A stretch of 64,000 nucleotides of DNA from Azolla caroliniana (Eukaryota > Plantae > Polypodiophyta), in contig JBHGNT010000006.1 of the NCBI GenBank assembly GCA_043228905.1, positions 6,014,001 to 6,078,000 on the forward strand, written 5' to 3'. The position numbers and the translations under genes are program-made. The notes beneath the pieces are model-generated. The model ran no database searches and was not told the DNA's origin. It saw nothing but the letters and a program-made list of their open reading frames with translations. Each line of letters begins with the position of its first letter. Within the stretch, counting starts at the first letter, position 1. This document shows positions 20,454 to 57,263 of the stretch, in pieces.

Positions 20454-23400
20454 TTACACGCTCCTATCTACATTTACCAGGTGCCTGGCTAAAAGCTCTT
20501 CTGCTCTTCTAGCAACTAATGAAATCTTAGCAAATTCATTGGGTTCAGTGATATAATTTGATACTTGATCACAAGCCAAACTGACCAAATTTGCGAATTT
20601 CATTGCATTTTGTAGCTTCTGTGCCACTTCACCATCCTTGCTGATCATCATATTAAAACCCACTGTTCCAGGTTTTCCTCTTGCCCATGTATACACCATA
20701 CTCCCAAATGCTGGATTCAAATGTAATGGTGGATCATATGACCCCTGCAAGGCCGCCACTTGTTTCCTCAGCATTTCTAGGTTCAAGAAGACATCTTTGA
20801 GAGGTTTTGTGATTCTATATAGGGATTCTCTTGGGTCATTGAAAAGATTCTCCGCTTCGAGTTCAGATGGCATCAATGTGGCCAAAATGCCAGCAAATTC
20901 AGCTGGCAAAAGGTTCTTCATAGAAGTGCATGTTAGGACCACAGCTAACCATAATGCGTTATCCACATTCTGAAGCCTTGAAATTAACATTCCTAGAGGC
21001 TTAAGCCGTGCATGATGTACATCATTAGCATCACTATCATCATCACGAACCATAGAGATTGCATCCACTTTTTCCATTATGTTTAATAGCTTCAATGCTT
21101 CTTTCCATGTTTTGCTTCCAGTCACACTTTCATTCCCAAGTAGAAATGCATCTTTTTTCAGTTCAGGTATATAAAGTTTATTACTATTACTACCCTGTTC
21201 AGTTTGATTATCAGGAAGTTGCAAGCTTCTCTTTTCTTCAATCAGATTTGAGATTTTTGCTTCCAAAATGTTGATTTCTCTTCTGAGGTGTAGCCCTTCC
21301 CTTACCACATCACATTGAACTGGATAGTCCATTAGCAATTTGACATACATTTTGGTTTGCGAATTTCCACTTGCAACATACCCACATGCCCCTCTATGTT
21401 CTACTTTCCAGCTGTCCTTGGGAGGTACTACAGGGGGATGCAGTACCGATCCAGTTGATTTCTTGTAAAGAATATCAAGAGGAAGCATCTCTTTTACATA
21501 CACATGGTCAAGAGCACCAGCAGGTAGCAGCCGAAAGTTGTTATCTGCTCCAAGAACCATGTATAATGACTCAACCTGACCTGGAACACAAGCAATAAGG
21601 AAGGCAGGGAAAGTGCTGCCTGTTTGTGAGGCTGAATGAATAGTCATTCTTATATCAACACGTGTAAACATGGCTGCATCTAAGAGCTTTTGTTTGTTTA
21701 CTTCTGTCAACCCTTGAAACAACTTCACCTCCATATCAGCCTTCACCTCCAAGCACCTAAGGATTTGTAAATCTAGATCTTGCACCTTTTTGTTCTTCAC
21801 ATCTGCGGCATAATATACAAAGTCATGATAACTACTCTCCAATATTGTTTTTACTTGAGAAAGACTGTATTTTGCTACCAGATTTGCAACCAGAGAATAT
21901 GATGGCTTGTGAGTAGACATCATTTTAAAGCTATTATTCAGGACCACGTATGCTACCTCTTTGGGGCCAGAGTAGAAATTTTCCAAGAACAACACATTCC
22001 CTTCAATATCATAACCCCTTCTACCTGCACTTCCAAACAATTGCAAGGCTCGATGACAGGGGATAGGGTGAACTCCATCTTTTGTAGCTTTACATATTGC
22101 TGGCAAAATGATTGTCCGAGCCACAATCCCAGTATGTAATAAAGTATTATCTGTAACAATAAGAAGTTTGAGGATATTCTTTTGGAATAAATCAAGGACA
22201 AAGTTTTGCCATAAAGGCATTTTGCCTTCATGACACATTGCAAAACCCTTGCGAAGAGCTTTAAGTTCTTTTTCATCAATGTGTTCTAATAGGCCAGGAA
22301 CATATTGTGCAAGTTTGTCTATACTCGCCTCTAGTTCAGCAAGGTCTTGCTGGGAAAGTAGTCCCTCTCCGAGAGCTATAAGGGCATCTTCCATCCCTTC
22401 ACTGCATTCTTTAACAGAGAAAAAAACCAACACAGCTGGCAGCATTGCATTCTCTTCAAGCAAACCAAGAGCATTCTTCAAACTTGGCCTATCATAGCCA
22501 ACCCAGAAAAAGGAATCTTGTTGTTCTTTGGTCATGGAATTGTCATAACCTCCATTGGATTCAGAGAATGTATTATTTAGTTGTCTGCCCTTTGTATCAA
22601 GAAGCGGCTTCAATGCTGACCCACAGCAATAGAAAAATCTTCTCAGGACAGGCTCTGATTTGTAGCAAATAAGCTTACAAGCTCCCTTTTTCTTGCCCAT
22701 CCAAGACACAACCTGTTCCTCATTGGACGATGGCAATGTAAGTGCAATGACGCTGATTTTAGGATCCATGAGCATCAATACTTGCTCCCACAGTCTATTA
22801 TAGCTTTGTTCACTGAATGTGTGAAACTTATCTAGTACAACCAAGTTTACATCCTCAAAGAAAGAGCCATATTCGGAAGTGCCAGGGCCATTGAGCTCTT
22901 GGATAATTTCAGCAAGAGATTCCAAGGTTAGGACTATCAATTTCTCACCCTTGTGAATTCTCTTTCTTGCCCATATGCCACCCACATTGCTACGACCATA
23001 GATAGTTTGTAGGCTAAGGAACTTTTGTTTTGCAAGATATTCATATGGAGTGATAAACAAGGTGCGGCACTCAAAAATTATATTTTTATAAAGGCAAAAG
23101 TCGGCCGCAACAGACTTGCCAGAACCGCCAGAAGCAGACACGAGCACAGAGCTCCCGTCTTGCACATATTTAAAGACCTCTTTTTGCCATGACTCTAATC
23201 TAATGCCCATCAATGCCTCATAAGTATCCTCATCAATATCCAAATCACATGATTTTGCATGTTTTATTGCTGATATAGCATCTTCATACTTCTTGTTGCC
23301 CACAAGTCTCTTTACATCTTGAAGAAGCCGTGTTTTTTGGACTCCTTTTCTATCAGATATCAACAGATCTGCCCCATTTGTCAGCTGTGTAGAATCATTT

Positions 23401-24560
23401 CTCCCTGCTATCTTCCTTTCTGCCATTTCAGACATTCCACCAGTGATGAACTTGGGCTCCTCGGATATTCCACCACCAGATGCCTTTTTAGTTGAAAACC
23501 TTGAGACTCTAGTGCTCTCTTCAATCATCCTCATACCTTTGAGATTGTCATCAACATGCTCTATGGTTATCTGATTGCGGATAGGCCAATTACTTGAATT
23601 CTCAACAGTGCCCCTATCCATGAAGTCATTATTCCTCTGATCTCCCTCTGTCTTCTTTCCGGTTCTAATGGAACTTTGCATGTCAAATGTGGACTTATGT
23701 TTCTTTCCTACTGCCTCAAAGAGTCTGCTTATTGCATAATCTGTGCTCTCATCAATTTCATCACTATGTTTGAGCTCATTGAGGACAGATTCCCTTGCTT
23801 CCATCATGTGTTGACCTTGCAAATTTCTTCCTCTTACATGGGTTGTTTCTCTAGCCACACCATGTGAAGAAAACCATTTCGATGCTCTCTCATCTCCTGT
23901 CTTTATAACTTGCATGCTATGATTTCTCTCTGATTGTAACCGCTTTATTTCTACTTTGCCTTGTAATACCTCCCCTTCTTCAGAGTTCAATTTCTTTGCA
24001 TTGTTCCATTTTTGCAAAAGCTCAAGCAACATATGGGAACTTTTAGAACTCTCTTCTCTTCTCTTCATGAATGTACTATCTAACAGTTTTGATCCATTAT
24101 GTGTTGAAAGTCTAGATTGCACTCCATTATAAGAACTCATTTGATTGCTCTCTAATCTTGAAATCCCCAGCTGATTTCTATTTGTTATACCTTCTCCTTT
24201 TCTCCATACCCGTTTCTGCAACGCTCCAGGTGTTTTGAATTTTGGGTATCCTATCCCCATATCTTCTTTATAGGACTCCTCAACCATATCTAGCTTTCTT
24301 GACCTATCCGAATTGGAGTCTTCTTTGTATTTGTTCAGAAATGGAGCTCTACCATTGAATGAGGGTGGGTAGGTTCCATTAACAAAGCTCTTGAGTTCGT
24401 CTGTTGGATATACATGATCAAAAGAAAAGTTCTCATCCACATTATAATGATCATCTCCACTTGGGATATCCTTATCATTATTCCCATTGCCTACTGTATG
24501 TTCTTCGAGGTCTGGTAGGGCAGGATCATTAACAAGGACATTACTGATTCCATCATCATT

Positions 24561-24596
<36 letters not shown>

Positions 24597-25562
24597 TTGT
24601 TCTTCTTCCTCGAGTTCTTCATTGATGACATCTTCTTCATTAATGGTATCTTCTTCGTCATCATCAGTAACCTCCTCATTTTCATCCCCATCTTCTTGCT
24701 CTTGTTCTTTATCATCAATGACAACTTCTCCCTCGTCTATGAATTCCCTACCAATATAAACCTCATCTGGTATATCATCAGAAAAACGAACTCTGTGCAG
24801 AAGACCATCATCACCTTCACCATCATCGTCGATGTCATCATCACAATCATCATCATCTATATCAGCGAAACCAACACCTACATCAACATCATCATTGACC
24901 TCTGCTTCTAGGTTCTTCTCCTTTTCCTTAACCATGCTTAATAAAACCCTAACAACATCAGGGTTCTGGAACCCAAAATGCCTAGCACCTTGAACGTGAT
25001 GCACACCATATACTTTCACAACTTTGTTCCAAACCTTCTGAGGAGATTCTGCATGGAAAACGGCATTATTACCACTCGTGCTATTAGTAGTACTACTATC
25101 CATCAAAATTTCTTCAACTACAAAAACAGGTCCATTCAAGCCCTCTTCTATACTCTGCCTATACAACCGGCCCTTGTAAGTCTTAGTGGAAATGTACCCT
25201 ATAGGATAAGGGTAGCTTCTGCTTGAGTTCCAATATAACTTAGATTTATTATCTCTTAAATCACCCGTGTTATAGATTTCCCCCCATCTCTCTATAGTCA
25301 GAGATGTGTTTGCATGATAAGGTAAATCATATGTATTTGAAGAAACTTCATCTTTCCTTAAGGAATTGTGTTCCGTGATGCTGAGTTTCTGTCGCTCTGT
25401 TCTTGTTATCTTGTTTCTGATATGAAAGTGTAGAGAAAAAAGCTTCCTTCTTGAAGGTAGGAGGAAGGAATTACATCTTTTGTGTAGGAATGCAGAGCTC
25501 GGTCGAAGTGGACATGGGTATGGTGAGAATGGGTGGTAAAACTGTAAGGTTGTGCTGGCCAT
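20454..25562 (-). CDS. Intronless 1702-aa protein: putative plastid transit peptide + FYR domain + acidic tract + ISE2/Ski2-like DExH helicase body with degenerate motifs + DSHCT-like C-terminus
   Basis: Uninterrupted 5.1-kb ORF. The N-terminal ~50 aa are rich in S/P/F/R and lack acidic residues. aa ~80-212 are FYR-like (SLTIERWGEI, YPIGY, GPVFVV, SPQKVW, HFGFQNPDV). The helicase part is colinear with ISE2 (GSSVLVSASGGSGKS, VVLDKFH, PLLDTKG, MLPAVLVFFS, PLWQNFVLDLFQ, AGRRGYD, SYSLVANLVA). C-terminal LGMLISRLQNVDNALWLAVVL...PAEFAGILATL is DSHCT-like. Confidence 0.9.
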
Positions 25563-27566: not shown

Positions 27567-29794
<2,228 letters not shown>

Positions 29795-36493: not shown

Positions 36494-39400
36494 ATGGAGA
36501 CTAGAAGAGGATGGCCTTGGAAAAAGAAATTTAGTGAGAAGATTGCACTTGCTTCTCCTGAATTGAGACAAAACAATGAGCATTTGGTAAAATAATTTTG
36601 TCTCCATTATTTTCCCCTCATTGTAAGATATTTTGATATGAATGTAACAACTAAGCAATCATCCTAATCACACGGCCTAGTTTTTTTCCCAGCCTACAGA
36701 TGAGAGATTTGATGATCACATGTGTTTCTTTTGACGACACTTTATAGTTTTCGCAATGTTCTCATTAAACTTAATTATACTGAATTACATTGCTCTTTTA
36801 TCATTAGAAAAAGATGTCATCCCTAATTAAATGTGCTTTTACTAATTGATGTTCATGTGCTTATTTAATATCACATCAAATTTATGCCCTACAAGTAGAA
36901 GAACTACATCAAAACCTTTCTATTTCGACTGAAATAGATGAAATGCAAGTGCATGTTAGATAGAATTAGATGGAATGACTTTTACTTTGAAATTCTCTTA
37001 GATTGAAATGAAATTAATGCCAAATTACTCCCAGATTTACATAGTTTGAGACAACCTAATTGTCGAATTATTTGAATTGAAATGTCTCTTCTTCCTTAGA
37101 TAAGCCTGTCCAAACATTATTGTCTTTTATTAGGACCCCAACATACAATTCAAGGACCAATCTGAAAAGGAGGGCATGAATCTCTTACAACAAGCAGAGG
37201 CCAAAATTGAAGAACTTGCTAAACAGCTTTATACGAAGGACGAGATGATCTTGCAACATGCCAAAGTATCCGAAGAGGCAATTTTAGGTACAAATCAATT
37301 GTGTTAATGCTAGACAGAGTAAGCTTACTATTGGATGTAAGTCTTTTTGAGGAATTTTGACGTAGAACAAAAATGCCGATATAAAGATCATAAAGTACCA
37401 TATACATGTTAGGATCGTTTTGGATTGCATTAATATTGGGCCATATACGGTTTTCCAATGAGATTTGCGGTTATAAAACGAAAGCATTGATGTACGCATT
37501 GGAACGTGCATAATCATATAAAGCTCAAGAATGCCAGGGAGAGCTCAACATTGCACAAATAAACTGAGAAATCCCACCAAAGCTCAACCGCTGACTATAA
37601 TTCACAATAAGTTTTTAGGCATTCATCTTGTGTGAGAAAGAGCCCAATCCCCTCATAATTCTAAGATTTCTTGTGTCTATGATATGAAACATGCTTAAAT
37701 AATTAAAGATCAAATAAATTTTTTTAAATCCACCTTTTTCTATTTTACAATTGCAGGATGGGAAAAGGCCGAGTCTGAGATTACCAACATCCAACAAGAG
37801 CTCAATGCGGAGACCCACAAGCGGCTTGCAACAGAGGATCGTGTTTCACAGTTGCAGAGCACATTGAGGGAATACATGGATCAGCTCCAAAATCTCCAAG
37901 AGCAACAAGAGGAGAAGATACATGACATGGTGCTCAAAAAAACAAGAGAATGGGAAAAAGTATGCGAAGAGTCGCAAGAGAAGATCAATAAGCTTAAAAA
38001 CGATCTCTTAGCAGCAGAAGCAGAGAATTTTGCAATGAATGAGTTGCTCCAAGAAAAGGCTAAGTCCATCGAAGAAGCTAAAGAAGCTAGAAATAGAGTT
38101 GAAGAGGAGGTTAAATTACTACAAATTAAGCTCGAATCCACAGAGAAGAACCTAACAAACTGGAAATACGAGATGTATTTAATTAGGAAGGAATTAGACA
38201 TACGGAATGAGGAGCTCAGAAATAGCAAGAAGATATCAGAGGTCGCTAACAAGCAACATCTCAAGCACATGAAGATAATTGCTAAGCTTGAATCAGAGTG
38301 TGAACGCATGCAGCTTTTTGTTCGAAAAAAGCTGCAAGGATCTGATGTCCTAGCTCAGACAAGAATAGAGTTAGGGTCAGGGTTGAACCCAGAACAAGGT
38401 CGACAAAGGACACCAAGAATTAACCAAAACAAGCAAGATCAAGGATTGGTTAATTTAAGAAATTTGGGTTGTGATACGGACGGCTCTGATCACCCAAATT
38501 TGGCAATGGTTGATGAAGAAAAGGCATTAAGAGAGCTCCTCTATAGAAGCAAGGGAGAGCACAAAGATGTAAGAATGGTTTGTACTAGGCTCTCTTCAAA
38601 GCAAGTGGATCAAAGAAGATCAAACCTAGTATCAAGATTTAATGGTATTGGTAAATTCAAAGGCCATACTAACAATTTCTCGAGTGAGGACCATAACATC
38701 ACATACAACGAAGAGCTGAGTGTCATATCTATTTTCAAGGATGGAATCGTGCATAATGAAAACAATGGTTTAGAATCGTGGGCTAATGCTCTTGAGTCTG
38801 AGCTAGCACGATTGAACAAAAAGAAGTGCCCTACTAGCTCTATCTCGGATATAACCATGCAATCACCACGTTCTTTTGAATTGATGGACGATTTTGCTGA
38901 AATGGAGAAATTTGCATCGATGTCTGATCTTCACAAAGATTTAGAACTTGACGTGCAAAGTCATATAGTTTTAGATCAAGGGTCAGATGTGGTAACAAAG
39001 AATCTATGCCATCAGTTGCCTACTGGTGTCTCTAATTGCCAATCAGAAGAGAGTATTTCCAAACAAGATGTGTCGTTAGAGGCAATAAATGGAAAAGAAA
39101 CTAGTCGAGAATTGGCCTTAGCAATGAACAAGGTGGTTAGTCTCATCGAAGTGCTGTCACAATATAACTATAATGCAGAAAATGGTCTTAATGAGACAAT
39201 TTCTTATAAGCAAAACCATGTCCTTACAAGCTCAGAGTTCAAATCTTGTGTCCAAAGCCTCATCACTCTATGCAATTGTGTCTTGCATGATAAAGTGGAC
39301 ATTATGGACTTTCTTGCTGAAGTGGCATCTGCTCTAGACTGGATACTGAATTACACTTTCTCCTTAAATGGTCCTCAAATAACAAATGTGCAAATAAGCA

Positions 39401-41067
39401 ATCTGAGATCAGGTTGTGATAGTAAAAAAACCACACTGGAAGAAAGATATCCTCATGATATTCATGATCACAAAACCATTTGCAGTGATGTGGACATTAC
39501 AAGGTTTCATAGCCTTGAAAAGCAGTTGAAATTGGAGAAAGATGCTACCAAGGAGAAATGGGCTCTATTGAAAGAAGAGGTTGCAGTATTAAAAGCTCGA
39601 CTAGAGGTATCAAGCATAAATGCAGCTGAATTGAAATCTGGTCTTTCTTCAGCTATGGAAACCAAAGGGTCTCTTATGATTGATATGGAAAAATTTGTAG
39701 CCTTGACGAATGAACTTGTGTCGCACCTTTCTGATGCCAAAGAAGATCTAAAGAAACTTGAGGTGCAATTTTTTTCTTTAGAATTTCTGCTCCAAGATTA
39801 TGTACAATGCAACAAAGATGTCAAGATAATGCATCAAGACCTCTTCGATAGACAATCTCGTTCAACAGGGTAACATAAACACCATGTTACGTAATTCTGT
39901 AGGTAGAAGGTAACTAGTTTTTAATGTTTCTATAATTTTCTATGGTGCTCTCAGGGAAACCGATTCTAAAATTGCACATAACAGAGTGACACTGCCTCAA
40001 ACATCTACAGAGAGCTCAACGACAAAGAAGGAGAAGGTATAGAAGTCATAACATTTTAACATGTTTTCCAATATTTGAAAGTAGGCTAAGGAGCTCATTT
40101 TATCAACCACACTCAAATCATCACCATAAAGCCATCAAAATTGGCTGACCAATGGCCACCCAATTGCTTATAATTCTACAATATGCTTAACTACCCCGTA
40201 TAATGTGGTTGTGTGTATGCTAATAACAAAAGTCTCAAGGGCTCCATGGTTGTAACTTATAGGATCTTGGGTTTCGATTAGTTCCCCACAAAGAATGTGT
40301 ATGAAGTTTGAGAAAATCCATCCTACACTTCTTCTATATCAAAATACCATATTCTTTTTTGACAAAAACTCTGGAGTACCACTCTAGACTTTTTATTTCG
40401 CCCAAACGCCCCTAGGTTTTCTTCATTTGGTGAAATTCTCTGGTAGGGAAAACTCCAAAAAACCTGTGAGCATTTTCTTTATTTATCACAATGCCGCTAC
40501 GTACCTCTTATTTCCCCAAATATCCATGTCGAATCAAAAACTAAGGGCACTTGGTGAAAAAATGTTCATCTTTTCCATTGCTAGAACTAAAGTAGTTCCT
40601 TTTACGATGATGATGAATGACAGGAAAAATGCATGGAGGCAACCACAAAGAAGCTAGAAGAATGCCATAGCACTGTACTTTCCATCGAGAAACAACTAAA
40701 TGATCTAGGAGAAGCATCGGATAATCTCACACAAAATTCTCCATACACAAGATCTCCGTTGAATAACCCAAAAACTCATAAGACTTTAAAAACTATAATT
40801 GATTATGACGACCATGAAGATCATGTAAAAATGGTAGGAAATCATGAGAGCATACCACAATCAATAAACCATGGAAATCAAAATGTGTTTGTTTCTTCTC
40901 CATCTCCTGGGAGGTTCTTAAGTCTAGAAGCTTGGGAGAACCAAGAAGCATTTCCTCCATGTTCTCCTTCCATCTCTGCAGCAAAGAAACGTGAAAATGG
41001 TGCGAAAGGGTTAGGCAGATTCTTCACCAAGAACAGGGTATCTAAAACCCTGAAACCCCTAAATTGA
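36494..41067 (+). CDS. FPP: Filament-like plant protein (DUF869, FPP4/5/6-like coiled coil), 961 aa, 5 exons
   Basis: Exons 36494-36586, 37134-37287, 37757-39869, 39955-40036, 40624-41067 (2886 nt, in frame). FPP motifs METRRGWPWKKK, QHAKVSEEAILGWEKAE, IAKLESECERMQLFVRKKL, SWANALESEL, LMDDFAEMEKFA, KLEECHSTVLSIEKQL. Confidence 0.92.
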
Positions 41068-41356: not shown

Positions 41357-43954
41357 AAACTTGGAGCGATACATGTTCTTATAGGACTATTTGAGGCTAA
41401 AGAGTCTTTGTAGGAGTCCACATATGGGGAGAAAACATAACATCGAGCTCAAGCACGCCCACTTAGTGCAAGAGTTTTTCTCTACCAGTAGATTGGGTCC
41501 ACATGGTATCAATTGTTTGGCTTTTTATTTTCTTATCTAGTTAGGTGATGGATAGATTGCCCCTAAAGAGATCGATTATGGTTTTGGGCCTCCTTCATTT
41601 GGAAAGGTGAGAGGCCTATATAGGGTTTCAAACAATTGCCTTCTTTCTACTTATGGATTAATGCATCCTATAAGAAAGATGCTACATATGTATATGCATA
41701 ATACAATGATGTTATTTTTTTAAATATTAATGACTTACACTTTTACCTCACATAGTGAGGGCAAGTTATTTGAGACTACCATGCAAGGACACTTAAATGT
41801 GAACATATTTCTTATTATAAGCAAAGACGTCACAATAAAATTTCCATTTGTTTTTAATTTGAAAGGACACAATGAATCAAACATATATCTTTTGTTATTT
41901 GGTTAACATACATCCTCAAGTTCTAGCAAAAATAAGCACAAATTGTTAATCCATTACTTAGATTCAAAGCTCTACAAATCATGAAAGCTCCAATAAACCA
42001 CCAAAGTCAATGGCAATGCAATGTCCTAGGCATAAATGCATCGCCATCAATTTTGAAGCCTCTTGATTCCATCTATTGTAATCTCATATGTTTTAGATCA
42101 TGATTTCAACAATATTTCTTATTCCCACCTTGCCTTTATTAGTTGCACCTTTTGCCATTGACTAATGAGGGAGCAAGGAAAGTAGGAAACTACCTCAACC
42201 TTGTGGTCCTTCATACTTTGATCTTCTACAAGACATGACAAGAAATCTCTTTATAAACACATGCTCGTGCATGCGACTAGGTATCATTGTTGGTTGGGAC
42301 TCATGCATAGTATATGCACATTACTCACCAAACAATCACACATGTAGTACGTCAGCAACGCTTCACCATGCCTTGGTTGCGCCATTGTTCAATGTTCTTT
42401 TGGGAGATTCCCAATAGTTCCAACTAATCCCATTCTATTGGCACTTGTCCTCTCCCTAGTTGATGTTAATGTATCATCATCGTCATTTGTACCAAATCAC
42501 CAAATGATTGTTAACTGATACTTGCCATTCTAGATTCTTGTGCTTGGTTTACATGAATAAAAATGTAACCTCTTGTAAATGCCTATCCAAAAAGGCCAAG
42601 TGGCTATCTACAATGCATTTTAAGCAATTAAAGTCCATTGGACTACGTATGCATGCAAATTGGGTGGAGTGCAAAATTCCATGAATCTTTGCACTTGCTT
42701 TTGCGTGATACACAATAAAGATGAAAAAGGAGTGCAACAACAAGATTCACACGAAGTATATGCAAAGAAAGGAAATATCTCGAAATTAAAGTACTACCAT
42801 CGCTAGCCTATGGATATGATTTTAGCTTGACATCATAGAGTTATGCGTTGGCTTCCATACAAAATATTGAAACAAGATTTGTATACATTAAAAGATAAAA
42901 AGAGGTTCAAACTTCCAGAAGATCCATCCGAAGGTTTTGCTTGGTATACCCACCCATCAACATAAACCGAAGGTGAAGGCGCAAGATTTTGGAGATGGTC
43001 GGATTCGTAGTTGCATTTGTGTCCAAACCACAAGAAATAAGACAAAAAAAAGATGTGGAGGAGAGCCAATGTTTAAACAGGAAATGAGATGTGTGACAAA
43101 GGATTTGTTCGGAGCTCTACCCCACGAAGTTTTCAAAAGTTATGACGAATACCTTTAGGCATACACAAGAGTATCGATTTGGTGATCAATTTTATGTCCA
43201 TAATAGCCATGTTTGGATGTACTTGTAAAAGCTTTATACATATTGCCGAGGGGTATAACGTGTAATTAATTGAAAATTGGGGGGTATTATTTGTGAAGTC
43301 ATGAAACTTATAGAGGCGTCTGTGGCTGTTTTTGTCTTAGAAATAGCAAAATCGAAGAACAGAAAGATAAAGAGTGTCAGATTATAGATATATATTGTTT
43401 CCTTATAAGTTATAATCAATCGTTTGTGTAGATTATTAGGGTTTCCTCATCTGTTACGATTCACGAAACAAACGATTTCCTTTCTCAACAGATTTGTGTT
43501 TAAAGTTCTCATAGAAAGAGATGGATTTTTGCAGGGATTCGATGTCTTTCATGTGAAGAAAGGTCAGGCAAAGTATTTCGGGCTTCTGAGGTTTTTTTTT
43601 TCATATAAAGAGAGATCATCAAAAGATTAGGTTTCTGGTCACTTTTTTTGCGTGCAAAGAAAGACAAGGCAAAAAATTATGTTTTTTTCATATAAGAAGA
43701 AAGAGAGAACAGGTAAGGCAAAAATATCGAGTTTTGATTCTAGTTGTGAACTGTAAAGAAAGGTAAGGAGAAGTTTTAGATTTCTGAGACTTTTCTTCAT
43801 CTAGGAAGAGATATAAATATGTATAAGAGAACTTTCTCGTATAGAGAAAGATCAGGCAGATTTTAGGTTTCTCAGATGTTTTTCATGTAAGAAAAATTAC
43901 AAAAGAGAAATTTGGGGTTCTAATTTTGTGTTCTAAGAGAGATTGAGAAGTTTC

Positions 43955-45067
43955 ATGTCTCTGCCCAAAGATATACTAGAGAACATTTTTTGCCGCCTTC
44001 TGGTGACTGACATTGCCCGATCCCGAGTTGTATGTGAATCATGGAGATCTTTACTTTCTTCCGAAGATTTCTTGGTTAGATATAAGATTTCCAATGATGA
44101 AAAGTGGGTAGCTGTTTTTGATGAGAATGGTCTAAATAAGGAAAGAATGCTAATCTTGTACAATGCATCTTTAAAGACATGGCATCATGTCTCACTTTGC
44201 TTTCTTCCAAATGAATTCACTTATGCTGTGGCTTCCTCTGGTGGTTTGCTATGTGTTGCTGGACAACCTAATGGGAAAAATGTACTATGCGTTTGCAATC
44301 CCTTCACAAGATGCTATAAAGTACTACCAGAGTTGGATCAGGAACCCTCTATACCAGTTGTAGTCATGATAGAAAGCAAAAAAAGTCACACAGAAAGAGG
44401 AAAAGACCATGAAAAGAAAAGGAGCATGGGTGCCCATTTTCAGATACTTGCTTTGCGAGGAGATGTGGTGGCTCTTTACTCTACAAAACACGGGAATTGG
44501 CAAGCTTTTAACACTGGGTTACCCTATAGGCCGAGGAGCCCGGTGGCATGTGAAGGTATTGTATATGGTTTGCAAAATATGGGTTCTCCATGGAAATCTA
44601 GTTGGAGACTTGTATATGCGAAGCTCAATGAGTTTTGTTGCAAGGAAGTATGGTGTGCTATCAATAGACCTGAGTGGGGTGAAATACTAGATATTTTGCG
44701 GCAACCTCGGCTATTAGAATCAAATAACTCTCTATTGTTAACTGGTGGATTGCGACGAGGAGTGGCTAATTTTTGCTCTACTTTCATTATACTAAAGCTG
44801 GATTTGATCTCCCTTGAGTGGAGTGAAGCTCAGAGGATGCCTTATGCTTTCTATAAGCATTTTGATCCTGGGGCTGATTTTAAGATATTCGGAGGACGAG
44901 GGATGGTTTATTTCTCGAGCAAGAATCCAGGGAATCTTGTTGTGTGTGATCTCTCGGGAAGTGGAGATAGGATATGGAGTTGGGTTGAGGGATGCCCTTC
45001 AAACTATCAAAAGAATGGCCTGTGTAAAGGTTTTCCTCTAAAGCCAAGATTTGATATATTTCCTTAG
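43955..45067 (+). CDS. SKIP15: F-box protein, SKP1-interacting partner 15-like, 370 aa, intronless CDS
   Basis: F-box LPKDILENIFCRL...VCESW. SKIP15-like motifs CNPFTR.YKVLP.L, LPYRPRSPV, GSPWKSSWRL, EWGEILDILRQPRLL, LILKLDL.SLEW-type IILKLDLISLEW, FKIFGG, GLCKGF. First ATG at 43955; an upstream exon cannot be excluded. Confidence 0.88.
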   Translation: MSLPKDILENIFCRLLVTDIARSRVVCESWRSLLSSEDFLVRYKISNDEKWVAVFDENGLNKERMLILYNASLKTWHHVSLCFLPNEFTYAVASSGGLLCVAGQPNGKNVLCVCNPFTRCYKVLPELDQEPSIPVVVMIESKKSHTERGKDHEKKRSMGAHFQILALRGDVVALYSTKHGNWQAFNTGLPYRPRSPVACEGIVYGLQNMGSPWKSSWRLVYAKLNEFCCKEVWCAINRPEWGEILDILRQPRLLESNNSLLLTGGLRRGVANFCSTFIILKLDLISLEWSEAQRMPYAFYKHFDPGADFKIFGGRGMVYFSSKNPGNLVVCDLSGSGDRIWSWVEGCPSNYQKNGLCKGFPLKPRFDIFP

Positions 45068-53615: not shown

Positions 53616-55475
53616 ATTTGTTGACTAAGCCAAACAAACGAATGAATCCTAATTATCCTTGGAGCGATGAGTCCACACACTAAACATTCTACAGTCTTAA
53701 GACCAAGTGAAGCTAAATATGGATATAGCACTGATTCCAAATACAATTGACTTATTTTCATCTTTCATTCTCGGAACCATACTGATTTTGGTAGTGTCTA
53801 CTGTCAAGACCACTGTGGTAAATGTGAGTATTTTTTGGAGTGTAAAGACCACAGTGCAGTAAATGTGAGTCTATAGATATAACTATTTGTGTAAGTTGAA
53901 CCAAAAGATGATAGAATTTGATGTCCCTTCTTTGATGCAAATGCAAACACCAAATTTAATTATGAGATTGTCGAGATTGTCATCTATTTACATCCGTGTA
54001 CTAACTATTTGGTTAGTTTTAATATATGTGCTATGAAATAAATTCAATGTGCTTATTGTGTTATTATCATTCTGACTGACATGTTTGTCTAAAATATTTC
54101 ATATCTAAATCTAAAATAATGTGGTGGAGAAGTTGGTACTCTTAACAACCTACATAACATCTTACATTGCCCTTAATGTTAAATGTATATATATGTATAT
54201 AGTCACGCATTTTGATATTTTGATGACTGTTAATCCATGTTGATAAGTGTGTTTTGGGATCACCATGAAATGCATAATTAATCTAAGAATCAGAGCCTTG
54301 AGCATAATAATGTTTCATGTTCAAGCCAAACCTTTCCGATAACAAAATAATACATAGGTTATTTATTATGATCGAGCTAAAATCCTTACAATAATAAAAT
54401 ATTTCATATGTTACACAAAATTCTTCCAAAAATTAAATAATCGATATGTTACTCTAACGGGAAACTCACTAACACTTATACAAATGGGGACAACTTAGAG
54501 ATAATGAACTGACATTATATTTGTCAATGATGATCCCATAGCTGTCATGTCCAATCACCTTTATGTATGATCGACCCTTATCAGCTTAATGCCAAACGTT
54601 TCTAATTTGAAACATGATGATAATCATCTTTGTAGTCAATTTGATTGTAGGGAACTCAAAAAGTACTTGTTTCAAGGTTCCCCTTGGTTAGGTTACTCGA
54701 AGACAAAATGGACATTAAAGACACGAGAGGGTTAGACATGTTTGTTAAATGCCTATTCCCTCATGATTAGTTAGGGTTTGGTCTCACCATCCAGGAGTAT
54801 GAAGGTGCTTCTTTGGGGAGCTTTTCCTCAATGTGCTAGCCAAAAATTGTTTAAATGAAGATATTCGGCTTCGACTAGTGTGCACAATTTGTGTTGCGAT
54901 ATGTTAAGAATCAATTGAATATAAATGTGCTCGATGTGTGGAGCCTTGGTAGAGGAGGAGTATATATAATAATATACCAATTGCACTCGGTGCACGAAGC
55001 GCCCCAAGCGCAAAAGTATACCACGACCGTAATGCCGAGCTCGTTATTTGGGCAATCAAAATGGGCTCTTTGATTGGGAAGGCATTTATACAAAAGGGGA
55101 ATGTGGGGGGGGGTTCCGGCAGAAACATTCTTGCAAAAGAGACAGGGAGGGGAATATGAAAAGAAGAACATCCCATGGGAACTCCCCTTAAAGGGACGAT
55201 GATCAAAGACGAATGAATGGTGGCCAGCTAGATAGTGTCAGTCATTAAGGACACAAGAGCCATTAAACAGTAGAGCAGAAAACGTAAAACAACTGATATT
55301 ATTATGAATAAATATGCCATTAGCAAAAGTTATATATACTGTAGTCTGTATATATATATATATATATATTATTATGAATAAATGATAAATCCCATTCACA
55401 GTTATTATTCTGAGAAGATGGCCCCGGATCATCCACGTTGAACGGACGGACCCGGTGACGGACGTTAACGTCGCA

Positions 55476-57263
55476 ATGACGGCGAGCCAACACTCCGTCG
55501 CATTCTCCGTCTTCTTCTTCTTCGCCGCCGTCCTTCTGCTCTGCGCCTCTCTCCCGCCGCCGTCAATGGCCGGCGCCACAGACGGCGCTCCACGGCGTGG
55601 GGGCTGGAGTGTACGCGTGAAGCTCCACCGGATCACCTCCACCCCAACGTCGAAGGCCGTCAGGGATAGCGGCGCGCTGGACAGGCCTAGCGGCGACACA
55701 GGCTCCTCCGGTGGGGTGATGGAGGCGCTGAAGGGAGCAAGAGCGAGAGACAGCCACCGAATGGAAGGCATGGTAAGGAAGCAGATGAACAGAGCTCGAC
55801 AGGTCATATTCAACACGTCAGGTAGCAGTGCAAGGTCTGCACATAGCTCGACGGAAGCAGATGATGAACGGGGCGATCACAGCCACCGCCACGATGAAGC
55901 GAATGTGATGAGGAGCCGCATTCGGTCGGGAGAGAGTTCCGGCATCGGTCAATATCTCGTGGATCTAAGCCTCGGATCGCCGCCGCAACGTCTATCCTTC
56001 ATTCTGGACACAGGTAGCGACCTCACATGGGTGAAATGCGCAGGCGACATGAAGCAAAGCAGGCTGGCAAGCAAAGGCGAGTTCCATTCTTCTGAATCTT
56101 CGTCTGCTTCTGTTTCTGTTTCTGCTTCTGCGTCGCCGCCTTCTTCTCCTGATACAGGAGCGTTCGTGGCGGGGCTTTCATCCAGTTACAGGGCGGTGTC
56201 GTGCGTCTCGCCGTGGTGTTGGCTGGTTCCGCCGCCTCTGTGGTGGTCGTGCGACTCGGGAGCGCCGGGGAGCTGCGAGTACGAGTACGAGTACGCGGAC
56301 GGGTCGAGCACAGTGGGGAATCTTGCAGAGGAGGTGGTCACTCTGAGCAGCGATGGCGATGGCGATGGCGAAGGAGGAGGCGCGTTGGGGGTTAGGGTTA
56401 GGGTTAGGGTTGCCGATATAGTGTTGGGGTGTGCGTTACATGAGGCAGGCCAAAGCTTGAATGTAGGGGGGTCATCGGGAGTGTTGGGATTGGGGCGGGG
56501 TCTGCTCTCCTTCCCGTCCCAACTGCCGCCGCCGCCCATTGGAGACAAAGACAACAACAATCACCACTCCTTCCAACGTTTCTCCTACTGCTTCATGGAT
56601 TTCTTCCACCCCACCAATTCTACTACTACTACTACTACTACTGCTACCCACGGAAGCTACCTTCAATTCGGCCTGCCACCGCCAGCCCCATCATTTACAC
56701 TGCATTACACACCCCTCCTCACCAACCCTGTCATGGAAGGCTTGAGCTATTACTACGTGGGTGTCCACAACGTGACCGTGTCCGGCCACCCCGTCCCCGA
56801 CATAGACGAGCGCGTTTGGTCCATGGACGAACTCGGCCACGGCGGCACCATCATCGACACAGGAACCACCCTCACTTACTTGCCTCGCCCTGCCTATCAG
56901 CCCATCTTGGAGGAGATCATAGCCGCCTTGCTCTCCCTAGGCTTGGAGCTAACCAATGTGCCGGAGGAGGAGGATGGGTTCGGGTCCGAGGCTTGCTTTA
57001 ATTCGAGTGCTTCGCCGGCTTGGGTGCTGCGCCTACCAAAGCTCGGGATTTGCTTCAAAGGTGCCGATGCTTGCTTCGAGCCTCCGCCCGAGAATTATTT
57101 CCTTGAGGCGGCGGTCAACGTCCGTTGCCTCGGCATTCTGCCTGTCGAGTCACCTTTCGGAATGGCCGTGCTCGGAAACCTCTTCCAACAAAATTTCCTC
57201 ATTGAAATGGACACCCATGCCATGAGAATGGGTTTCTCCCCTGCCCATTGCATCCTCACTTAA
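55476..57263 (+). CDS. Atypical A1 (nepenthesin/NANA-like) aspartic protease, 595 aa, intronless
   Basis: Signal peptide (VFFFFAAVLLLCASLP); GQYLVDLSLGSPPQ; catalytic DTGSDLTW and IIDTGTT; Cys-rich insert; CEYEYEYADGS; GVLGLGRG.LSF.SQL; FSYC; VLGNLFQQNFLIE.D...MGF....C. Confidence 0.93.
   Translation: MTASQHSVAFSVFFFFAAVLLLCASLPPPSMAGATDGAPRRGGWSVRVKLHRITSTPTSKAVRDSGALDRPSGDTGSSGGVMEALKGARARDSHRMEGMVRKQMNRARQVIFNTSGSSARSAHSSTEADDERGDHSHRHDEANVMRSRIRSGESSGIGQYLVDLSLGSPPQRLSFILDTGSDLTWVKCAGDMKQSRLASKGEFHSSESSSASVSVSASASPPSSPDTGAFVAGLSSSYRAVSCVSPWCWLVPPPLWWSCDSGAPGSCEYEYEYADGSSTVGNLAEEVVTLSSDGDGDGEGGGALGVRVRVRVADIVLGCALHEAGQSLNVGGSSGVLGLGRGLLSFPSQLPPPPIGDKDNNNHHSFQRFSYCFMDFFHPTNSTTTTTTTATHGSYLQFGLPPPAPSFTLHYTPLLTNPVMEGLSYYYVGVHNVTVSGHPVPDIDERVWSMDELGHGGTIIDTGTTLTYLPRPAYQPILEEIIAALLSLGLELTNVPEEEDGFGSEACFNSSASPAWVLRLPKLGICFKGADACFEPPPENYFLEAAVNVRCLGILPVESPFGMAVLGNLFQQNFLIEMDTHAMRMGFSPAHCILT

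Follow-up and report, generated by a model that had tools for sequence, protein, structure and literature searches.

The closest characterised relative of the protein described here is ISE2 (also DExH15 or EMB25; AT1G70070), a chloroplast DEVH-box Ski2-like RNA helicase on which the splicing of chloroplast group II introns depends and which binds its RNA targets (PMC9497791). The present analysis concerns one open reading frame (ORF) in a 64,000-nucleotide stretch of the Azolla caroliniana genome (assembly GCA_043228905.1, contig JBHGNT010000006.1, positions 6,014,001 to 6,078,000; hereafter the window), the product of which joins an N-terminal FYR domain to an ISE2-like helicase body with altered catalytic motifs. 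We consider it probable that this ORF represents, in ferns, an ancient and conserved streptophyte family of pseudo-helicases, and that its product most likely serves as an adaptor or scaffold.

ISE2, which falls in the sister clade, shares with the window protein the order RecA1, RecA2, middle region and DSHCT, but its motifs are canonical and it lacks an FYR domain; the window protein, with only 21-24% identity to ISE2 proteins, carries about 750 extra N-terminal residues and reads DKFH and TLP at motifs II and III. The best matches among solved structures over the helicase body are Mtr4, FRH and Ski2, helicases of the nuclear and cytoplasmic exosomes. These, however, are active DExH enzymes of another lineage with canonical motifs, are 14-17% identical to the window protein in structural alignments, and have an arch/KOW insertion rather than a beta domain of apparent ISE2 type. 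The role of FRH in the Neurospora clock is reportedly independent of its ATPase activity, a precedent for a scaffolding function of the Ski2 fold.

The best functional analogy is offered by the C-terminal cassette of Brr2, a conserved Ski2-like module that does not hydrolyse ATP but binds nucleotide, offers a platform for protein interactions and exerts control over the active cassette (PMC8220420). The inactive Brr2 cassette is spliceosomal and fused in cis to its active partner, whereas the window pseudo-helicase would be the product of a separate ISE2-lineage gene and carries an FYR domain; the match between the two is remote (sequence E of about 1e-10; template modelling (TM) score of about 0.47). 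Degenerate helicase folds are also reported to have been kept for assembly roles in Utp25, D. radiodurans PriA and a C. elegans pseudohelicase-centred complex (PMC9539457, PMC4504706, bioRxiv 10.64898/2026.09.04.749402). These belong to other helicase families, are unrelated in sequence and share the principle only. The FYRN + FYRC module is that of the FYR chromatin proteins (KMT2/trithorax, plant JMJ14-type demethylases and TBRG1), chromatin-acting proteins in which it is paired with SET, JmjC or PHD domains, whereas the window protein pairs it with a helicase. The accessible parts of the literature on ISE2 in ferns, pseudohelicases, FYR with helicases and ISE2 paralogues contained no description of an FYR-helicase or of an ISE2 paralogue, and all members found are annotated "hypothetical protein" or with a generic domain name only.

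Altered helicase motifs and their fixation in the family

In superfamily 2 (SF2) helicases, the Glu of motif II is the residue by which the attacking water is activated, and it is through motif III that hydrolysis is coupled to unwinding. To describe the departure of the window protein from this pattern, its helicase part was aligned with 97 canonical relatives taken from an exhaustive hidden Markov model (profile) search. The Q-motif Gln (W792-Q793), the P-loop G-K-S, the Asp and His of motif II and the AGRRG of motif VI are conserved. Motif Ia is changed from TPLKAL to TP(S/Y)E.L, Ib from TTE to TLE, II from DE to DK, III from SAT to TLP and HHAG to CHEG, and the TGD of motif Ic, the FSR of motif IV, the GIN.P of motif V and the first Arg of motif VI are gone. 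Glu occupies the motif II column in at least 90% of the 97 relatives, and Lys or Arg in none of them; D-E-x-H is likewise present in all non-family matches with a located motif II (the best 60 of the profile search). Across 127 positions that are at least 85% conserved in the canonical set, the family keeps 52, has swapped 15 for a residue fixed within the family (including E912K, K841E, T880L, A943L, T944P and T817S) and is variable at 60.

A word search recovered six fern relatives of full length, with 45-59% identity across the helicase part: Pteridium aquilinum (a transcript), Ceratopteris richardii (KP509_25G043200), Adiantum nelumboides, Adiantum capillus-veneris and two SRA-derived contigs. 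Their lengths (1557-1710 amino acids) are in line with that of the window ORF. The profile search, which covered 1.84 billion representatives in a library that collapses proteins at 50% identity, added the lycophyte Diphasiastrum complanatum (1483 amino acids), the liverwort Calypogeia fissa (1484), the alga Mesostigma viride (P0015; 1943), a fern-like fragment (P0011), two short ENA fragments (P0072 and P0088) and a Ginkgo biloba model of 680 amino acids, which comprises the C-terminal half only, without RecA1. The Ginkgo fragment is a family member, but it lacks the region bearing motifs II and III. Full-length members and the large fragments (P0011 and Ginkgo) scored at least 552 bits, the short fragments about 220 and Mesostigma 327, with all else at or below 326 bits. 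A family restricted to ferns is ruled out by the lycophyte, liverwort, Ginkgo and Mesostigma members. It should be noted that Selaginella, hornworts, mosses and angiosperms had no representative in this exhaustive search, the collapsed library of which could hide close relatives; for the angiosperms, absence is unproven, as seed-plant proteins at least 50% identical to the Ginkgo fragment would be masked. The fragments P0072 and P0088, which share 53% and 44% identity with the window protein, respectively, lie on ENA contigs of 1-6 kb and are probably plant DNA within environmental samples.

The altered motif states recur throughout the land plants sampled. Motif II is D-K or D-R in 10 of the 10 land-plant sequences that cover it, namely eight from ferns (three of them taken from named genomes and one being the Pteridium transcript) and those of Diphasiastrum and Calypogeia. 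The variants are DKFH, DKLH, DKFC and DKFF, with DRFH in the liverwort, and motif III in these members reads ALTLP, ALSLP or ALSGP. Motif I is G-K-S throughout the ferns and the lycophyte, where W-Q is kept as well, and the AGR of motif VI is invariant in the family, extending to AGRRG in 9 of 11 sequences. The exception at motif I is Calypogeia, in which P0013 and P0159 read APGGAGKF, with Phe in place of the Ser/Thr that follows the P-loop Lys; nucleotide-Mg binding may have been lost in this lineage, to judge from that substitution, though the rest of the pocket stays.

The ORF is intact in each full-length member. Selection was estimated by the Nei-Gojobori method from the three sequences with DNA, in which dS is saturated, so that the dN/dS values are upper bounds. 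In the helicase part, pN is 0.21-0.27 versus a pS of 0.62-0.70, and dN/dS is 0.17-0.24 overall and lowest in RecA1 (0.11-0.17), the domain that carries the odd motifs. The motif state is fixed in the family, under purifying selection, and is not decaying. At the level of sequence and model, the protein thus has the features that define a pseudoenzyme, with its catalytic residues gone and its fold retained under purifying selection.

These data also bear on whether the ORF is a neutrally decaying retrocopy, or its AAG codon at motif II a sequencing or assembly artefact. The fern gene is intronless (see below), as expected of a processed copy, but a frame of 1702 open codons, a dN/dS of about 0.2 or below and an identical architecture with identical substitutions in at least 10 species from liverworts to ferns all speak for a maintained gene. 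Besides the window, the AAG codon is present in two independent assemblies (L001 and L002) and is thus not a read error. We regard decay or artefact as extremely improbable; orthologue comparison, dN/dS and the AAG codon in independent assemblies together rule out a pseudogene, ongoing decay or a read error.

A preliminary description of the window had called the frame a candidate pseudo-helicase with systematically decayed motifs. The coordinates that it gave for motifs I, II, III and VI translate on the minus strand into the motifs it named (Table 1), and the ISE2 consensus that it used for comparison is found in the real ISE2 of six species (Arabidopsis, Ceratopteris, Diphasiastrum, Calypogeia, Psilotum and Physcomitrium), which read APTSSGKT, D-E-V/I-H, LSAT, TETLAAGIN and QMAGRAGRRG. 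The candidate itself holds up as an intact, selected, ISE2-related protein with non-canonical catalytic motifs, D-K/R and xLP being fixed across ferns, lycophyte and liverwort, and the dN/dS near 1 that would have spoken against it was not seen. The term "systematically decayed" misleads, however, since the altered state is old, dating to the land-plant stem, and has in part been re-fixed (the 15 of 127 positions).

Origin of the family, coexistence with ISE2 and loss of introns

To investigate the evolutionary history of the family, a maximum-likelihood tree of 43 helicase bodies was reconstructed, with support given by the Shimodaira-Hasegawa-like approximate likelihood ratio test (SH-aLRT). 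The FYR-helicases, including that of Mesostigma, are monophyletic (SH-aLRT 99), and green-plant ISE2 is their sister group (support 90), so that the window protein lies outside the ISE2 clade in a separate sister clade. Together, the two groups are nested among cyanobacterial-type Ski2-like helicases, far from Mtr4, which formed the outgroup. An origin from the Mtr4/Ski2/HEN2 lineage was considered and is ruled out, as the nearest non-family matches are cyanobacterial-type helicases and ISE2 (about 300 bits) and Mtr4 is an outgroup.

Fern, lycophyte and liverwort ISE2 sequences were obtained with a Selaginella ISE2 query; a poplar-type ISE2 query gave angiosperms only. A separate canonical ISE2, the presence of which the preliminary description had left to be checked, occurs beside the family member in Ceratopteris (KP509_18G021200), Diphasiastrum, Calypogeia and Mesostigma (P0041 and P0203). 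Since the two coexist, the family represents an old ISE2 paralogue and not a replacement of ISE2.

Mesostigma has the FYR fusion and reads DEFH at motif II, which dates the catalytic loss to the land-plant stem. Its other motifs include HHAG, TESLAAG and RAGRRG, yet motif III is LVP; P0015 thus stands at an intermediate stage and may still be an ATPase. We propose that the FYR-helicase family parted from ISE2 before the divergence of Mesostigma. On the land-plant stem, the Glu of motif II would then have given way to Lys or Arg and the SAT of motif III to xLP, much of the RNA-contact surface (motifs Ia, Ib, Ic, IV and V) would have been replaced, and purifying selection would have acted since.

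The land-plant members stand on a long branch (0.72 + 1.07 substitutions per site). Such a stem fits a change of function, and it is one of the observations that bear on whether the land-plant proteins are instead still-active, non-canonical ATPases or helicases, slow or specially regulated motors that use another catalytic base or a Lys912 with a perturbed pKa. For an active enzyme it can be said that the nucleotide-pocket residues are kept more strictly than a pure scaffold seems to need, and that Mesostigma retains DEFH despite the loss of SAT. However, the motif II column, which holds Glu in at least 90% of the 97 aligned canonical relatives, shows Lys or Arg in none of these, and motif III, one Arg of motif VI and motif V were lost together. 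An active motor therefore seems to us quite improbable.

Within the ferns, A. nelumboides has two copies (P0004 and P0420) that are at least 90% identical and group with Ceratopteris. The A. capillus-veneris protein P0006 (motif II DKFC; long branch of 0.63) lies outside the clade formed by the window protein and the Polypodiales members. This split of the two Adiantum species suggests either an ancient duplication within ferns or a copy that evolves fast.

All four fern genes (those of the window, Ceratopteris and the two Adiantum species) consist of a single exon, in contrast to the intron-rich genes of the liverwort and the lycophyte. The gene spans 5097 nt in Ceratopteris, 5019 nt in A. 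capillus-veneris and 5133 nt in A. nelumboides, in each case equal to the coding sequence. In Calypogeia, the gene extends over 11 kb (L003:2001-13055) in 26 tblastn pieces, corresponding to about 25 introns, and in Diphasiastrum the intron-rich gene spans 136 kb. The ISE2 gene of Ceratopteris is likewise intron-rich, with a span of 57.7 kb. The simplest reading is that a processed copy supplanted the intron-rich parent gene in a fern ancestor, an event that would be older than the fern radiation, so that a poly(A) remnant or target-site duplications would hardly be expected today.

Domain architecture and genomic setting

The gene spans 5109 nt of the window as one exon with an unbroken frame that encodes 1702 amino acids (Table 1). 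From its predicted structure, the protein has a Ski2-like SF2 helicase fold, comprising RecA1, RecA2 and a helical DSHCT domain. The AlphaFold2 (AF2) model of the helicase body (predicted local distance difference test (pLDDT) 87.6; predicted TM score (pTM) 0.82) aligns at full length with Mtr4, FRH and Ski2 over about 950-1000 columns (TM of about 0.6, E to 4e-36), and a sequence search of the PDB returned Ski2, FRH and Mtr4 at about 1e-30. Pfam Helicase_C stayed below threshold in the window protein. The short helices and the long helix that follow RecA2 are, in our reading of the model, the winged-helix region of the Ski2-like layout.

The beta-rich insertion in the middle part of the protein, the position of which aligns with ISE2 (SYHVALGSDNSWYL), is among the best-conserved parts of the family, with the signatures FTRVD.R..., YMV.G.DN.F.L.P and DHVY. 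Pfam assigns SH3_ISE2 (PF25446) to the ISE2 of Ceratopteris; for the window protein, no match to it was found at an E of 1 or below.

An N-terminal FYR domain is common to all full-length members. When the window segment was searched alone, FYRC exceeded its Pfam cut-off (23.1 against 21 bits) and FYRN stayed below its own (17.7 against 24 bits), and a Pfam scan of the whole protein likewise gave weak FYRN and FYRC matches near the N-terminus. Among ten family members, FYRC is matched by nine and FYRN by eight (best E 4e-8 and 3e-6, respectively), and the family profile matches the FYR region of KMT2D in the PDB (E 7e-4). The AF2 model of this domain (pLDDT 88.7) has 2WZO as its sole significant PDB match (E 1.9e-5, TM 0.67), an entry described as the "structure of the FYR domain".

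Upstream of FYR, the members carry a non-conserved presequence of 13-164 residues, which in most of them has many Ser, Thr, Arg and Lys and few acidic residues. To judge from its composition, the presequence of the window protein (residues 1-74) may be an organellar transit peptide. An acidic tract, which differs in length and sequence in each orthologue, separates the FYR domain from the linker motifs. Two short helical motifs stand out in the linker. The first has invariant columns E504, S508, S509, L512, L515, L516 and W519, and its LL..W core reads LLQKW in ferns, LLQYW in Diphasiastrum and LLEEW in Calypogeia. In the second, D604, E605, S606, T607, A610, L614, F615, E616 and G619 are invariant.

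Table 1. Positions of the FYR-helicase gene, its domains and motifs, and neighbouring open frames in the window
Feature	Positions	Strand	Residues	Remarks
Whole gene	20454..25562	-		Single-exon ORF, 1702 codons + stop; FYR + ISE2-like candidate pseudo-helicase
Presequence	25341..25562	-	1-74	Ser/Thr- and Arg/Lys-rich, few acidic residues; first Asp/Glu at residue 56
FYR domain	24915..25340	-	75-216	FYRN + FYRC
Acidic low-complexity linker	24528..24914	-	217-345	13 consecutive Asp; sequence non-conserved
Linker motif 1	24003..24056	-	503-520	REE..KSS.MLLELLQKWN
Linker motif 2	23706..23753	-	604-619	DEST.YAIS.LFE.VG
RecA1	22608..23210	-	785-985	Pfam DEAD E 5e-14 at residues 792-942
Motif I	23112-23135	-		ASGGSGKS; translation checked; ISE2 counterpart APTSSGKT
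Motif Ia	23034-23051	-		TPYEYL; RecA1
Motif Ib	22914-22928	-		TLESL; RecA1
Motif II	22821-22832	-		DKFH; Lys codon AAG at 22827-22829; translation checked
Motif III	22731-22739	-		TLP; translation checked
RecA2	21978..22529	-	1012-1195	
HHAG counterpart	22224-22235	-		CHEG; RecA2
Motif V	22128-22154	-		TDNTLLHTG; RecA2
Motif VI	22014-22043	-		QLFGSAGRRG; translation checked
Short helices, then long helix	21681..21965	-	1200-1294	AF2 secondary structure
Beta-rich insertion	21369..21662	-	1301-1398	Model strands at 547-644
C-terminal helical domain with DSHCT	20457..21362	-	1401-1702	
DSHCT	20670-20996	-	1523-1631	Pfam E 3.8e-5, 24 bits, cut-off 22.7
PRISE-type protein	28796-29794	+		Long open exon; progesterone 5-beta-reductase / iridoid synthase-like
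Filament-like plant protein (FPP)	37852-39873	+		Long open exon
F-box / KIB1-4 beta-propeller protein	43943-45067	+		Long open exon
TAXi-type aspartyl protease	55455-57263	+		602-codon unbroken ORF; TAXi_N, TAXi_C, Asp

The window is ordinary nuclear plant DNA with a GC content of about 36-40%. Around the gene lie open frames for a reductase of the PRISE type, a filament-like plant protein, an F-box protein and an aspartyl protease of the TAXi type, and the exons of the first three mark the region as gene-dense and nuclear. The sole GC-rich part of the window, at 54-58 kb (43-48% GC), is home to the protease ORF. An Rfam scan of the window gave zero matches.

Proposed function of the pseudo-helicase

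With the motif II Glu and motif III gone, ATP-driven translocation is not expected of the window protein, and its motifs indicate that ATP hydrolysis and RNA translocation have very probably been lost. In the nucleotide pocket, the Gln of the Q motif, the P-loop Lys, the Asp of motif II and two Arg of motif VI are fixed, so that an adenine nucleotide may still bind. We propose that the pocket may hold such a nucleotide as a structural or allosteric ligand, like the inactive C-terminal cassette of Brr2, and that the protein would act as an adaptor or scaffold, for which it would use its FYR domain and DSHCT together with the beta insertion and the two conserved motifs of the linker. It may do so in the RNA-processing setting of ISE2. 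A function alongside ISE2 would be plausible, and the co-occurrence of the two proteins would fit a regulatory action on ISE2. The analysis establishes the domain architecture, motif states, conservation and phylogeny of the family, together with the loss of introns in ferns and the presence of ISE2 beside it; from these we infer that activity has been lost and that nucleotide may be bound, as well as the scaffold role, the localisation and any connection with ISE2.

The same retained residues could also serve an ATP-locked RNA clamp, which would bind single-stranded RNA across RecA1 and RecA2, be unable to hydrolyse ATP, and thereby mark or protect a target RNA. In addition to the pocket residues just listed, such a clamp would draw on residues of motifs Ia (TP), Ib (T.E.L) and V (ART), all of which are retained, and on the entire Ski2 fold, including the C-terminal helical domain. 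However, many positions of the RNA-contact motifs that are at least 95% conserved in canonical relatives have been lost (K841E, R884A, R1050V/I and T880L), with removal and in some cases reversal of charge, the T-G-D of motif Ic has become W-x-x, and motif V varies at G1143, N1145 and P1147; these positions are assigned to RNA contact from general SF2 knowledge and not from a modelled complex. An RNA clamp is unlikely on this evidence. Of the non-catalytic roles put forward in the preliminary description, that of a scaffold is thus favoured, whereas that of an RNA clamp is weakened by these losses (K841E, R884A, R1050V/I and the missing Ic).

Several observations weigh against the adaptor or scaffold interpretation and the history proposed for it. 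The sister relationship with ISE2 comes from a quickly built tree in which branches are long, and its SH-aLRT support is no higher than 90%. A Lys at the position of the catalytic base, as read from the sequence, is not strict proof that ATPase activity has been lost. The first Arg of motif VI (R1178), present in 100% of canonical relatives, is Ser, Ile, Leu or Thr in the family, and the motif VI Gln is replaced by Pro in 4 of 11 family sequences; together with the GKF of Calypogeia, these changes erode the nucleotide pocket and make nucleotide binding uncertain. The 60 of 127 positions that vary within the family point to real relaxation in parts of the core. FYR domains and poly-Asp linkers are typical of nuclear proteins, and the organellar-looking presequence appears to conflict with the nuclear-type FYR domain and poly-Asp linker that follow it. 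Finally, transcription in relatives is suggested only by the Pteridium transcript and the two SRA-derived contigs.

The preliminary description had also suggested a connection with the heavy organellar RNA editing of seed-free plants. We find no support for this. The family predates land plants (Mesostigma), is present in Ginkgo and had no Selaginella, hornwort, moss or angiosperm member in the exhaustive search of the library collapsed at 50% identity. It is a streptophyte family, not a peculiarity of ferns or of seed-free plants, and it carries an FYR domain that the earlier account did not mention.

A broader and more speculative possibility, which we put forward as doubtful, is that the family represents a pseudo-helicase partner of the organellar RNA-processing machinery about 450 million years old. 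In this proposal, a nucleotide-binding but non-hydrolysing FYR-ISE2 paralogue would dock on ISE2 or its ribonucleoprotein substrates and regulate them. It would have been kept in liverworts, lycophytes, ferns and Ginkgo and lost from model angiosperms and mosses, and hence been overlooked. Plant organellar RNA biology comes nearly all from angiosperms and Physcomitrium, and no family member was found in either.

As a candidate regulator, the pseudo-helicase is open to direct testing in Ceratopteris, for which transformation and CRISPR are available. The loss of all introns from a 5-kb gene in ferns provides a datable case in which a retrogene probably supplanted its parent. For the FYR domain, the union with a helicase is a new domain combination, and the helicase in question is a Ski2-like one that has apparently turned pseudoenzyme. 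Its history offers a clean natural example of stepwise pseudoenzyme evolution, from Mesostigma, in which SAT is lost and DEFH kept, to the land plants, with their D-K/R and remodelled RNA surface.

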